From the sequence record MH791414.1: 64,000 nt of DNA, one strand, 5' to 3'. The translations under genes and the position numbers were made by a program. Of this stretch, positions 3,869 through 48,215 are shown one piece after another (within the stretch, counting starts at the first letter, position 1; each line of letters starts with the position of its first letter). The notes beneath the pieces were generated by a model. That model did not search any database and was not told the DNA's origin. It saw only the letters and a program-made list of their open reading frames with translations.

Positions 3869-4198
3869 TTATTTCTTCAACATCCCCGCCAGCTTATGCC
3901 GAGCAAGGTTCATGCTTTGTTGTGTATCTGCTTGGGCACGTTTCCAAGTCACTTTACCGAAATCCTCGATAGGACTGATGTTAACTTTGGAATCTACGTT
4001 TTCCTTAACCCAACGCTTCCATTCTGCTTGTTGCAGTTCGTAATATCGCTTTGCCTCTCGCATCCCGGCAGTGTTCATTTTAGCCTGAACAGAGTCTAAC
4101 ATAGTGATATATTGTTGAACGATCCGGTTATAGTCTTTCGCGGTTTTCTTCTCAAAAGCCTCGTCAATGCGCTCAAAGAATTTTTCATTCGATATCAT
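3869..4198 (-). CDS. putative internal head (capsid-packaged) protein
   Basis: N-terminus MISNEKFFERIDE ends in an I-x-E gp21-type cleavage motif and resembles that of 4480..5031; basic mature part. Confidence 0.45.
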   Translation of the reverse strand: MISNEKFFERIDEAFEKKTAKDYNRIVQQYITMLDSVQAKMNTAGMREAKRYYELQQAEWKRWVKENVDSKVNISPIEDFGKVTWKRAQADTQQSMNLARHKLAGMLKK

Positions 4199-4487
4199 TA
4201 TCTTCTACCTCTTCGTCAAAACTCTCCATATATTCTAAAGGATTGTACCCAGAAATGGAAGTCCCCAACAGAGAAACCAACCATTCGATTTTTTCTTGGT
4301 CGTCTGTCACAACTTCTAGGTCCGACTCGTCCAGTGTTCCATACACTTCAGAATGTTTACCTAGGATCTCACCAAAATAAACCCGATGACCAATTCGGCT
4401 TTCAATTTCTTTACTGTTAGCAACGAATAGTCCTTCTACGCTACCCTGCCGACCACAGTCCCAATAAAACCGATAAAGCTTAAACAT
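4185..4487 (-). CDS. conserved phage hypothetical protein
   Basis: YWDCGRQGSVEGLFVA...YFGEILGKHSEVYG motif family; acidic. Confidence 0.6.
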   Translation of the reverse strand: MFKLYRFYWDCGRQGSVEGLFVANSKEIESRIGHRVYFGEILGKHSEVYGTLDESDLEVVTDDQEKIEWLVSLLGTSISGYNPLEYMESFDEEVEDNDIE

Positions 4488-5031
4488 TTTCAGTATCCTC
4501 TACATCAAACACAATAATATCATCTACATCTTGACCGATAAGATCTTTGGCTTCATTCAGCATACCTTGGAACTCTTCAGACAACATAAGTTGCTCTACC
4601 AAAGCTTCCATCAGAGCTTGTTTTTGCCCAGCACCCAACTGTTTCTGGGAGATTTTACCACCAGTACCTTTCGGCATAACAGTTACAAAATTAACCTCGC
4701 GACCCTTTACAGAAGCTACAACAGATTGGTTTTCGCTTTGACTATGGAACATGTAAGTACCAGACTTTATCTTGTTATCTTCGACATGCTTAATCATTTT
4801 GCGGGCGAATGATTTCCAATCTTCTGCGCTTTTATCGCTACGCCGTTGAATACTGCGGGCTTGTGCGTGAACCGAACTTTGCACCTTATAGGCACCGACG
4901 CGCATTGATACCGGTAGTTTTGCTTTTTTACTCAGCTCAAATTCTTGATCTTTTGTTAAAGTGACTACTTGATTTCGAGATAGCTGCATACTCTCATCAA
5001 GTCTTTTGAAAAAACTCTCAGCAGTGATCAT
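4480..5031 (-). CDS. putative internal head protein with BECR/RelE-like core
   Basis: True start probably ATG 5031 (SD AAGGA). N-term MITAESFFKRLDE, core HAQARSIQRR...FVTVMP, tail with repeated L-x-E and an acidic end. Confidence 0.45.
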   Translation of the reverse strand: MITAESFFKRLDESMQLSRNQVVTLTKDQEFELSKKAKLPVSMRVGAYKVQSSVHAQARSIQRRSDKSAEDWKSFARKMIKHVEDNKIKSGTYMFHSQSENQSVVASVKGREVNFVTVMPKGTGGKISQKQLGAGQKQALMEALVEQLMLSEEFQGMLNEAKDLIGQDVDDIIVFDVEDTENV

Positions 5032-5064
5032 TTTCAATCTTTCCTTTTTCGTTATTAGTATATG

Positions 5065-5071
5065 TATTTAG
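5065..5071 (-). promoter_or_regulatory. late-promoter-like motif CTAAATA
   Basis: Variant of T4 late TATAAATA, just downstream of a terminator and about 34 nt before ATG 5031. Confidence 0.55.
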
Positions 5072-5081
5072 GATAAAAGAA

Positions 5082-5097
5082 AGGGGCAAGTGCCCCT
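5082..5097 (-). terminator. intrinsic terminator
   Basis: AGGGGC/GCCCCT stem followed on the minus strand by TTCTTTT. Confidence 0.7.
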
Positions 5098-5100
5098 AAT

Positions 5101-5259
5101 TTAAAACAGGTTTGAATAAAATTCCGGTCTTAGAACGAAGATCTCAAAGAGGAAGCCCATCACAATAGCAACAAAAAACGAAATTTTCTCTTTTTTATTT
5201 TTGCTATAGAGCATACCCAACCCACATAAAAAACCAAACAACCATAACATGAAATTCAT
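5101..5259 (-). CDS. 52-aa membrane protein (below ORF-track cutoff)
   Basis: Manual translation MNFMLWLFGFLCGLGMLYSKNKKEKISFFVAIVMGFLFEIFVLRPEFYSNLF; SD GAGGTG. Confidence 0.6.
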   Translation of the reverse strand: MNFMLWLFGFLCGLGMLYSKNKKEKISFFVAIVMGFLFEIFVLRPEFYSNLF

Positions 5260-5266
5260 AAACACC

Positions 5267-5407
5267 TCAACTCATAGCAACAAAGGCCAACCCAGAGAGA
5301 CCAGACGCAACGTATCCGATGGTACAGGCTGTTTGTACGTTAGCACGCACTGACCGAACAGAACTAACGAAGAACACAGCACACATAACACCAAACAATA
5401 CAGTCAT
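5267..5407 (-). CDS. 46-aa membrane protein (below ORF-track cutoff)
   Basis: Manual translation MTVLFGVMCAVFFVSSVRSVRANVQTACTIGYVASGLSGLAFVAMS; SD AGGAG. Confidence 0.6.
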   Translation of the reverse strand: MTVLFGVMCAVFFVSSVRSVRANVQTACTIGYVASGLSGLAFVAMS

Positions 5408-27501: not shown

Positions 27502-27508
27502 CTAAATA
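27502..27508 (+). promoter_or_regulatory. late-promoter-like CTAAATA for the homing endonuclease
   Basis: 16 nt between the motif and ATG 27525; SD GAGGT in between. Confidence 0.6.
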
Positions 27509-27524: not shown

Positions 27525-28487
27525 ATGTCAAAAGATTTTGTAATTACAAGAAAAGATATTGAATTTATTGGTTCTGAATTTCCAACACCCCAAGGAGGAA
27601 CAATCACGGTTACCGGTGTACATGGTGTAGATAAAAACAGAACTAAAATATTCACATCAACTTGCTCCATTTGTTCTAAGGATACAGAGCTATATCCCAA
27701 CGAGTTTACTTGCTTAAAAGACCATCTATTAAAAGGTTCTGTTCCTTGTGGATGTTCAAAAAACCCTTCTTTAAATGAAGCTCAAAGGATAATTCTCATA
27801 AACAGGATACTATCCAAAGAGAAGTATTCTTTCAACCACTTTATATCTGGTTACGAAAATAAACATTCTAAATTTTCTTATGAATGCCCGGAACATGGAA
27901 CACAAATTACAACCTATAACAATTTCAATAAAGGTAGACGTTGTTTAGAATGCTCCAAAGACAGAAAACGTCTCACAGATGCTGAAAATATTATGGTATC
28001 GTGTTGTGAAAGTCAAGGTTTAAATTTTATCGATTTTAAAGATGGTTATAAAAATGTCAAATCGAAGGTCATTTATAACTGCCCAAAACACGGAAACCAT
28101 ACCACAGAATTTCGAATTTTAAAATCTGGTCATGGGTGTCCTGCATGTAAATATACAGGGTTTGACGTTCATAAGCAAGCATTTTTATATCTTGTAAGAT
28201 GGAAATCCCAATCTGGAAAAACTTGGTTGAAGTATGGAATAACAAACAACCCAGTGGAATTTCGTATAAAAAGACAACAACAAACCCACGAATTAGAAAC
28301 CGGTGAATTTATAGAATATGAAATTCTTCATACCAAAAAAGGATTGGGGTCTGATATCAAATCAATAGAGTTGTTAATCAAACGTCAATTCCCACATTCC
28401 GGTATATCAAAATCAGAAATGTGGGACGGGTATACAGAGACATTAGAAGAAAAACATCTATTTGATATTTTATCAATAATTAGTTAG
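27525..28487 (+). mobile_element. free-standing homing endonuclease (Zn-ribbon repeats + C-terminal GIY-YIG-like domain)
   Basis: Repeated CPxHG...G..CxxC modules; C-terminal LYLVRW...LKYGIT...R...GYTE; only convincing plus-strand gene in the window. Confidence 0.8.
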
Positions 28488-32221: not shown

Positions 32222-33299
32222 CCAAAAAAGAAAAAACGGTAAGAAGATTTTACCCTCTTACCGTACAAAGTCAACAATTATCTTTTCTTAGTTCTGATAT
32301 GATCCATCTGGCTAAATCTCTTCTATACTCACCGTATTTCCCAACGTACATAGTCTTATGCTTTCGCATCAACTTATAATACTCGTCGGGTTTCAGATGA
32401 CTACAAGATTTAATCGGGTATCCTAGAACACCAGAGTATTCAGGCCAAGTAACGAACGTCTTTTGTAAAACACCATAAATGGTGCCAACAAAAGATTTTG
32501 TTCTATCTGGCATGATAGAGTTTTGCCTTTTCTTCAAATCATAATAAACGTTAGAACAAAGACCCGCAGAATGTCTATAGTCACTAAAGTCATTCATTAA
32601 CGCAGTTTCTAGCGACTGAATTATAGCTTGCTTTATATTTTTCATTATTCCGACCTCTCTTAATGAGAGGGGAGCCCCATTCGACTCGCCCGGTAATTTA
32701 TACAACTACCGTTTTATTTAGGGTAGGAATATTCCTACAAGATTAACCACCGCGTCGAACATACCCCACACCACCCCAACCGGGAAGAATACAGCAGCAT
32801 AAAAACGATAATATGCCTCGGCTGGTTCACCGGGAAGATAGATCATTGTGTGTACGTTGTACAACCAGAAACCAAACCAAATAAAAAAGGGAATTACATG
32901 TTTAACTGCAATACGGACTATGAAATTGAAAATATTGACAATCCACATAATAATTCCCTCTCTTTTCCTCAGTATCTGATTAGATTATCTCAGGTTATGG
33001 TCTTTAAGTCAATAGGATTTTTTGATAAAAACATCATAAAGAACTTTAACCAAAACTACAGGCCACGCCAGAGTCCAGAACAAAAACGCGAAAACGTATC
33101 CAAGGATTCGAACTTTCTTAGGATCTACACCACAATCGATGCATTCTTGTTGGATACGTTCAAACTCTTTCTTCCCTTTCACCAAATAGTCTTTATCGGC
33201 GGGAGCTTTACCAGTAATGACCTTATCGAACTCAGCGAATGCAAAGACTGCGATTACAGCAAAAATTACAGCACCGATAACATAAATTGTATACATATT

Positions 33300-47607: not shown

Positions 47608-47631
47608 AAAAATCGCCCGAAGGCGATTTTT
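47608..47631 (-). terminator. intrinsic terminator with C(UUCG)G loop
   Basis: AAAAATCGCC-TTCG-GGCGATTTTTT on the minus strand. Confidence 0.85.
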
Positions 47632-48139
47632 ATTTAATGCAATCACAGTTCCGAAGGAATCTAACGTTTTGAGCAACAGTTTCTACATAGGTCTTGTTAG
47701 ACCCATAACCTGCATTAAAACTCTCAACGACTTTTCTCCAATTCCCACCACGAACTTTTTTCCAATAATCTAGCTCCATTAAAGCATAGTTGGCTGAAGA
47801 TTCCATAGAATTGATCAACTCATTTCTCAACTTGATTCTAGATCGATAAGACATTTTAGAACCAGTCAACTGCTCAATTCTTTTAGTTGTGGATCTCAGG
47901 TTGTTTTGAAAAACACCATAATCACCACTTTTCTTATTAATTAGGTTGACTCCGGCACGACTTTCAGTCAGGGCAATAGCCGCCAAGGTCAGACCGTAAC
48001 CAGATTCATTACCAAGCTCGTAAGCCCGTTGAATCGTGTAGATCTGATTTTCTGTCAACTCTTTATTTTCATATACCACTGCATTAGCAGTGAGCGAAGT
48101 AAGGGATAAAAGGATCCCAAAAAGTAAACCACTTTTCAT
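47630..48139 (-). CDS. vs.1: SLT/lysozyme-like transglycosylase, T4 Vs.1-like
   Basis: Signal peptide; AIALTES (catalytic Glu), YGVFQ, ESFNAG. Confidence 0.75.
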   Translation of the reverse strand: MKSGLLFGILLSLTSLTANAVVYENKELTENQIYTIQRAYELGNESGYGLTLAAIALTESRAGVNLINKKSGDYGVFQNNLRSTTKRIEQLTGSKMSYRSRIKLRNELINSMESSANYALMELDYWKKVRGGNWRKVVESFNAGYGSNKTYVETVAQNVRFLRNCDCIK

Positions 48140-48208: not shown

Positions 48209-48215
48209 TATTTAG
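48209..48215 (-). promoter_or_regulatory. late-promoter-like CTAAATA inside an inverted repeat
   Basis: AGGTCTA-TTATT-TAGACCT (48201-48219), about 70 nt upstream of vs.1. Confidence 0.45.

Follow-up and report, generated by a model that had tools for sequence, protein, structure and literature searches.

What could be the task of a small phage protein that joins a basic core to an acidic tail and is encoded on the early strand, among small early-type genes? The question is raised by ASwh1_15, a gene of the T4-like Aeromonas phage Aswh_1 (Straboviridae, Emmerichvirinae, Ishigurovirus; genome 229.7 kb), which is annotated as 'hypothetical protein CC2 102'. It lies in the 64,000 nucleotides analysed here, bases 1-64000 of record MH791414.1, referred to below as the window. 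An earlier reading made from the letters alone (the sequence-only reading) had singled out this open reading frame (ORF), without stating its strand, as a candidate injected ribonuclease (RNase) caged by its own tail. The ORF proved to be real and intact; it runs on the minus strand from an ATG at 5031 to a stop codon at 4480-4482. The explanation that we prefer, with a probability of about 0.5, is that ASwh1_15 is a T4-type internal protein, which would enter the head, undergo trimming by its protease and be injected along with the DNA, and which would cleave RNA by means of a RelE/BECR-type core.

Leader, candidate protease sites and late-promoter motif

A tblastn search with ASwh1_15 gave 35 phage records, all of them T4-like phages of Aeromonas and Vibrio, and a profile search of 1.84 billion cluster representatives yielded a family of 100 relatives, most of which are 120-160 residues long. 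All the members that were located, in named phages and in checked contigs, belong to T4-like phages, and no paralogue was found in Aswh_1. Conservation was counted in alignment A3, which holds 71 relatives; for E142 the count covers the 70 rows with a residue in that column. The copy in Aeromonas phage 65 (NC_015251.1, ~178772-179206) is annotated with 125 residues, both ends missing, while the copy in 65.2 stands in the structure library with 285 residues.

As a reference for the leader, ipI, ipII and ipIII of T4 were taken from NC_000866. The leader of IPII and IPIII, ten residues long, starts with Met, carries aromatic residues at positions 4 and 7 and an aliphatic one at position 8, and closes with Glu at position 10. 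According to a review (PMC9026906), targeting depends on positions 4 and 7 and processing on positions 8 and 10, and gp21 cleaves after L/I-x-E. The strict 10-residue pattern modelled on these two leaders was found in 22 of the 60 stand-alone members of the family, as against 1 of 616 background ORFs; P0026, P0025, P0057, P0081, P0029 and P0108 are among those that follow it. Of 2478 candidate starts in the whole Aswh_1 genome, a single one fits it. A looser measure, an aliphatic-x-Glu ending within residues 7-24, was matched by 54/60 stand-alone members and by 185/616 background ORFs, and it discriminates weakly because 30% of the background matches as well. The N-terminus of ASwh1_15 resembles the leaders of T4 IPI, IPII and IPIII, which are 10-19 residues long, contain aromatic residues and end in aliphatic-x-Glu. 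It is a variant leader of 13 residues that ends in L-D-E and so falls within the range of 10-19 residues ending in L/I-x-Glu. The column of E13 is conserved in 60 of the 71 relatives. In the AlphaFold model of ASwh1_15 the leader residues have a predicted local distance difference test score (pLDDT) below 50.

The machinery that would recognize such a leader is encoded by the phage, as it is in T4. The Aswh_1 genome is annotated with gp21, gp22, gp67 and gp68 (ASwh1_219 to ASwh1_222), gp23 and gp24 are also encoded, and all of these except gp67 contain many L/I-x-E sites. The gene of one metagenomic relative has a Peptidase_S77 gene at a distance of 7 kb and a Gp23 gene at 4.5 kb.

Late expression is suggested by the motif CTAAATA, which stands 20-82 nucleotides (nt) ahead of gp24, gp23, gp22, gp67, gp20, gp19, gp15, gp13, wac, gp48 and gp34 of Aswh_1 and is depleted in the window, a 64-kb early region (4 copies against 12.3 expected). 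One of these few copies precedes ASwh1_15, right after a hairpin that is terminator-like and would close the upstream early transcription unit; the motif is retained upstream of the homologue in phage CC2. A late promoter of the T4 type, TATAAATA, is absent ahead of ASwh1_15, the late motif of Aswh_1 being CTAAATA. At the level of sequence, ASwh1_15 thus possesses what synthesis late in infection, during prohead assembly, would call for. The T4 ip genes are in a similar position, located among early genes and yet requiring late expression.

L/I-x-E sites are in excess in ASwh1_15 itself, with 5 present against 1.6 expected from shuffles of the protein (P = 0.013). Besides the L-D-E at residue 13, they comprise LME, LVE, LSE and LNE, which had been quoted in the sequence-only reading and which end at residues 142, 146, 152 and 160; four sites inside 25 residues have a P of 0.0008 in the same kind of shuffles. 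E142 is conserved across the family (69 of 70 rows), and its context is likewise kept in 69/70 relatives, with Met, Ile, Leu or Val two residues before it, then Val, Ile or Met, and Ser, Gly or Asn after it. The sites at E146 and E160 are retained within the close clade. On the two sides of E142 the protein differs sharply in charge. Residues 14-142 have a net charge of +12 and an isoelectric point (pI) of 10.2, and residues 143-183, with a net charge of -11, have a pI of 4.05; the acidic stretch noticed earlier is present at residues 168-183. The core is net positive in all relatives, and the tail beyond the conserved Glu, with a median length of 13 residues, is net negative in 97% of them.

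The conserved E142 site and the acidic tail are in keeping with a further protease site and with a tail that is removed or serves for docking, and it is possible that residues 143-183 represent a propeptide or a docking tail. Trimming at both ends has a precedent in T4 Alt, a packaged ADP-ribosyltransferase that is cut by gp21 at its N- and C-terminus (PMC9026906), although Alt is far larger and unrelated in fold and chemistry. As judged from these sequence features, ASwh1_15 is probably packaged and processed at its N-terminus. C-terminal trimming at Glu142 or in the L-x-E cluster is less certain, with a chance somewhat short of even. The earlier proposal of a pro-protein made for the head has therefore gained ground on the side of the leader likeness, the gp21-type protease and the late-promoter motif upstream.

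Fold of the core and conserved residues

The two core motifs quoted in the sequence-only reading, VHAQARSIQRR (residues 54-64) and FVTVMPKG (residues 115-122), are both present. Since they hold the most conserved positions, they form the signature of the family. H55 is invariant (71/71), and R63 (69/71), W72 (68/71), S97 (67/71), T117 (66/71) and P120 (65/71) are nearly so. The motifs of ASwh1_15 are conserved and not a product of chance.

Profile searches were of little help in placing the protein. Its PHROGs matches are phrog_18967 and phrog_17629, neither of known function, and a sequence search of PDB with two family profiles found no match. The Pfam model DUF4258 / Ntox49 (Colicin-like BECR) matched 0 of the 71 relatives at E <= 0.01 and did not match ASwh1_15 at E <= 10. 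Weak matches to YceG, Cas6f and DndD, restricted to the ASwh1_15 sequence alone, were taken as chance. Homology of the body to T4 IPIII was rejected (hhalign probability 1.7%). In this respect ASwh1_15 is unlike T4 IPIII and the PHROGs of known function, to which its body shows no similarity.

Structural models were more informative. In the AlphaFold model of ASwh1_15 (mean pLDDT 76, core 86-93) the core consists of two short strands, two helices and a three-stranded meander; it is followed by a low-confidence linker at residues 121-150 and then by a tail helix and strand. The stretch with the clustered sites, residues 140-160, starts in the linker (pLDDT 56-65) and runs into the better-modelled helix. 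A compact relative, P0091, was modelled by AlphaFold with 81 sequences and gave a pLDDT of 91.6 and a predicted template modelling score (pTM) of 0.80. Its order of elements, strand-helix-helix-three-strand-strand, is that of the RelE-like group, whose topology has been described as a pre-strand, a pre-helix, a helix, a strand meander and a C-terminal extension (preprint 10.64898/2026.08.28.747851); this topology is found in both AlphaFold models. When the P0091 model was compared with PDB by Foldseek, PfiT (ParE/PfiT), HigB2, RelE, ParE, YoeB and Cami1 led the matches, and the RelE/ParE superfamily accounted for about half of the top 50 and for 10 of the top 12. A T4 RegB-type endonuclease was matched in the viral structure library at E 0.18. 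These models suggest that the core is likely to have a RelE-like fold, the level of the matches not proving homology.

The likeness to the RelE/ParE toxins (RelE, HigB2, YoeB, ParE/PfiT) comprises the order of elements, the basic surface and the best Foldseek matches, with template modelling (TM) scores of 0.4-0.57. In contrast to these toxins, the family shows no sequence similarity and no antitoxin gene, so that any inhibitor of ASwh1_15 would act in cis, and its most conserved positions are found in the first helix and in the strands 'FxS' and 'xTV', not at a C-terminal Tyr. The T4 internal proteins, for their part, differ from ASwh1_15 in that the latter has the predicted RelE-like fold, a second Glu site that is conserved and, at the C-terminus, an acidic tail.

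Among phage proteins, the nearest comparison is T4 RegB, a basic RNase of RelE/YoeB-like fold in which His48 and His68 are catalytic (PMC3014915). RegB shares with ASwh1_15 a small size, a basic character and a RelE/YoeB-like fold, and in both the first core helix, preceded by a strand, opens with His-x3-Arg-x3-Arg. When the family alignment was compared with that of RegB by hhalign, His55 fell on His48 and Arg63 on Arg56, at a probability of only 1.4%, and a hidden Markov model of RegB scored 3.1 bits on the ASwh1_15 ORF. Of the two catalytic His residues of RegB, the second is without an equivalent in ASwh1_15, and RegB is early, unpackaged and devoid of leader and acidic tail. Relatives that lack a second His more often have a His at position 96 (Fisher P = 0.011). 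We regard the RegB likeness as a lead only. That ASwh1_15 is an active RNase is a tentative proposal, to which we give slightly less than an even chance.

Proposed route of action and its rivals

If ASwh1_15 acts as an injected effector, the following course of events may be envisaged. The gene would be transcribed late from its own CTAAATA, the motif being observed and its use presumed. The 13-residue leader would carry the protein into the prohead scaffolding core, as in the case of T4 IPI-III, to judge by likeness of sequence. There the gp21-type protease would cut after L-D-E13 and probably also at the hydrophobic-hydrophobic-Glu142 site and the nearby L-x-E sites, shedding the acidic tail. 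The mature form, a basic protein of ~129 residues with a pI of ~10 and as such similar to the small basic mature internal proteins of T4, would stay with the DNA and enter the cell with it. Its most likely action would be metal-independent cleavage of host RNA, namely mRNA on the ribosome as with RelE and RegB, at a time when no phage gene has yet been expressed. The core that would carry this out has the predicted RelE/ParE (BECR) fold, and in it a His is invariant and an Arg, a Ser and a Thr are nearly so. In the producing cell, the acidic tail may hold untrimmed ASwh1_15 inert; an inhibitory effect of the tail on the core is, in our estimate, doubtful.

Several results weigh against this explanation. 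Pfam, NCBIfam and PADLOC gave no informative match for ASwh1_15, which thus falls in no Pfam family and shows no RelE/ParE profile likeness. Structure prediction and Foldseek, the check proposed in the sequence-only reading, brought out the RelE-like topology, while the full-length model of ASwh1_15 was uninformative, with no significant match. Even for P0091 the matches were weak statistically (best E 0.013, TM up to 0.57, HigB2 at 0.55-0.57) and none reached E <= 0.001. The BECR/RelE-like fold claimed earlier is accordingly borne out by topology and by the leading Foldseek matches and not by sequence profiles. Membership of the RegB family (PF10715) is opposed by the lack of a Pfam match together with the low hhalign probability, and the second His, present in 41 of the 71 relatives, is one residue off RegB His68 and is replaced by Ala in ASwh1_15. 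As to processing, the P0091 model places the strand that leads up to the conserved Glu inside the sheet; because of this, Glu142 could be structural instead of a cleavage site. The leader of ASwh1_15 departs from the strict T4 pattern by its 13 residues, its aromatic residues at 7-8 and its L-D-E ending, and relatives fused to RelA/SpoT-type enzymes have no evident N-terminal leader. Finally, no virion proteome of any family-carrying phage was found in the papers searched, and packaging is for that reason something that we infer.

The domain composition of the relatives raises the possibility that ASwh1_15 is packaged and that its RelE-like module is no enzyme. It would then serve to carry or dock other domains, or to bind RNA, the ribosome or DNA; the L-x-E cluster would be a release linker, and Aswh_1 would have lost the cargo and kept the tail. 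Close relatives of 273-305 residues have an additional C-terminal domain of 100-120 residues beyond the tail. The domains of the CC2 type and of the P0005/P0009 type are distantly related to each other, and that of the P0002 type is unrelated to them. The P0002 domain is 45% identical to ASwh1_343, a stand-alone gene elsewhere in Aswh_1 (MH791414.1 ~203618-203839, minus strand), an example of gene fusion onto the module. In distant relatives the module stands at the C-terminus of S-adenosylmethionine (SAM) lyase, of RelA/SpoT-type nucleotidyltransferases and of a Zeta-like kinase, and the metagenomic P0042 joins a Zeta_toxin/AAA_33-like P-loop domain (Pfam, below curated cutoffs) to a module of the ASwh1_15 type; such joining to other domains sets the family apart from the T4 internal proteins. 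It is because relatives bear extra domains after the tail, or end an enzyme with the module, that a role as carrier rivals a role as effector. It gains further from the presence in Aswh_1 of a Zeta-like kinase with a T4-type leader of its own, and from the fact that the tail and the hydrophobic-hydrophobic-Glu are kept even in fusions without an N-terminal leader. Nevertheless, we consider it unlikely. That a His is invariant, and an Arg, a Ser and a Thr nearly so, among proteins of ~25% identity is to be expected of an active site more than of a surface for docking. In addition, the majority of members stand alone, at 120-160 residues and free of cargo, and T4 targeting needs only ~10 residues (PMC9026906).

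Packaging is dispensed with altogether if ASwh1_15 is a cytoplasmic, late-expressed RNase of RelE/RegB type, or an RNA binder, that stands in for RegB and is tempered by its own acidic tail. No RegB (PF10715) homologue was detected in Aswh_1, the fold and the His/Arg spacing recall RegB, and the gene lies among small early-type genes on the early strand. The last point argues nothing, since the T4 ip genes too lie among early genes on the early strand. Preferably, ASwh1_15 is an internal protein, because the likeness of its leader to the T4 targeting sequence is far above background and the leader is shared by ASwh1_13; moreover, its promoter is late instead of early and follows a terminator. 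A cytoplasmic RNase is consequently rather improbable. It is less probable still that a packaged ASwh1_15 poisons host DNA gyrase in the manner of ParE instead of cleaving RNA. The top Foldseek match is indeed the PfiT toxin of the PfiAT pair, and several ParE structures rank beside RelE, but ParE and RelE/HigB2 are separated in rank by no more than noise, and it is HigB2 that has the highest TM. To our knowledge, ParE toxins do not require a conserved set of His, Ser and Thr.

Internal proteins are the first weapons of a phage to reach the cell. Those with known roles are, as far as we know, only IPI* of T4, an inhibitor of a restriction enzyme, and Alt. A toxin fold of RelE/RegB type has not been described before as cargo of this kind. 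If the interpretation of ASwh1_15 as an injected RNase is true, a widespread family of internal proteins with a toxin-type RNase fold would constitute a new class of injected effectors. The two conserved protease sites, together with the fusions to a SAM lyase, to RelA/SpoT-type enzymes and to a Zeta-like kinase, would then exemplify in nature how the head protease can control zymogens, and capsid targeting as in T4 would be a general route of delivery far beyond the T-even phages. In its broadest form, which seems to us unlikely, the proposal would be that T4-like phages of Aeromonas, Vibrio and uncultured hosts carry capsid RNase zymogens that are inhibited by their tails, activated by the prohead protease and injected so as to cleave host RNA ahead of all phage gene expression, the module also shuttling SAM lyase, RelA/SpoT-type nucleotidyltransferases and Zeta-like kinases into the head.

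Neighbouring genes and other leader-bearing proteins

Table 1. Positions, within the window, of ASwh1_15, its parts, its upstream signals and the two genes that follow it.
Feature	Position	Strand	Basis or remarks
ASwh1_15, coding sequence (CDS)	4480-5031	minus	183 residues and stop; candidate internal (packaged) protein
Ribosome-binding site AAGGAAAG	5039-5046	minus	Direct sequence reading
Residues 1-13, capsid-targeting-like leader ending L-D-E	4993-5031	minus	Predicted N-terminal cut site of a gp21-type protease
Residues 40-122, RelE/ParE-like fold core (predicted)	4666-4914	minus	pLDDT 86-93; P0091 model and Foldseek; conservation
Residues 140-160, four clustered L-x-E sites	4552-4614	minus	Site counts; E142 family-wide
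Residues 143-183, acidic C-terminal extension, net -11	4483-4605	minus	Charge; modelled as a helix, then a short strand
Late-promoter-like motif CTAAATA	5065-5071	minus	40 nt upstream of the ASwh1_15 ATG
Terminator-like G+C hairpin and T run	5082-5097	minus	Stem of 6 pairs, 5 of them G-C
ASwh1_13	3869-4198	minus	109 residues, phrog_18704; two genes downstream of ASwh1_15
ASwh1_14	4185-4487	minus	100 residues, phrog_5848; between ASwh1_15 and ASwh1_13, 8-nt overlap with ASwh1_15

The leader of ASwh1_15 recurs in ASwh1_13, where it again has 13 residues, of which 8/13 are identical, and ends in I-D-E. The bodies of the two proteins are unrelated, that of ASwh1_13 being basic and helical, and BLASTP aligns only residues 1-16. 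The two genes are on the same strand and no terminator-like site was found between them, from which co-transcription is inferred. In CC2 the homologue of ASwh1_13 (gp194) keeps the leader and directly follows the family gene. ASwh1_13 is, on its sequence, a candidate for a second internal protein, and the arrangement resembles that of ipIII and ipII in T4, which are also nearby genes with a common leader and different bodies.

The gene between them, ASwh1_14, looks like an inserted passenger. It occurs in 135 phage records, including ICP1, SPbeta-like phages and Erwinia jumbo phages, and its carriers include types of phage in which no member of the ASwh1_15 family was found. A role as antitoxin, or as partner in a toxin-antitoxin pair, was rejected for this widespread independent phage gene, and the family genes in CC2, Aeh1 and vB_VmeM-32 have other neighbours, so that an adjacent antitoxin is not a feature of the family. 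It was also considered whether ASwh1_15 and ASwh1_14 are the halves of a broken gene that corresponds to the relatives of 273-305 residues. This was rejected because ASwh1_14 is an independent gene, which matches none of the C-terminal domains of those relatives, and because its 8-nt overlap with ASwh1_15 is an ordinary ATG/TAA junction.

Just upstream of the terminator-like hairpin are two tiny hydrophobic ORFs, 5101-5259 and 5267-5407 (both minus strand), of 52 and 46 residues as annotated. They are conserved in position in CC2 (gp191 and gp192) and probably encode membrane peptides. The other copies of CTAAATA in the window are found at 32715-32721 (minus strand), ahead of an ORF of 124 residues (~32271-32645, minus strand); at 48209-48215 (minus strand), ahead of an ORF of 169 residues with a signal-peptide-like start (~47630-48139, minus strand); and at 27502-27508 (plus strand), ahead of an ORF at 27525-28487 (plus strand) with CapR and DUF723 domains.

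The leader pattern combined with the late-promoter motif provides a simple means of listing candidate injected proteins, and in Aswh_1 it flags a J-domain protein and a Zeta-like kinase, both encoded outside the window. The kinase gene, ASwh1_277 (MH791414.1 172879-173730, plus strand), has the only strict T4-type 10-residue leader of the genome, followed by a Zeta_toxin-like P-loop kinase domain (PF06414, 26.4 bits); CTAAATA stands 42 nt upstream, and the gene adjoins hoc. ASwh1_262 (MH791414.1 163157-164170, plus strand) encodes a leader ending in L-L-E and then a DnaJ J-domain (PF00226, 41.6 bits), with CTAAATA 27 nt upstream, and may represent a packaged co-chaperone. In Vibrio phage vB_VmeM-32, a homologue of ASwh1_262 and the family gene are two genes apart. 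Elsewhere in the record, the DNA polymerase (MH791414.1 70583-73465) is divided in the annotation into two CDS, which are separated by a small ORF.

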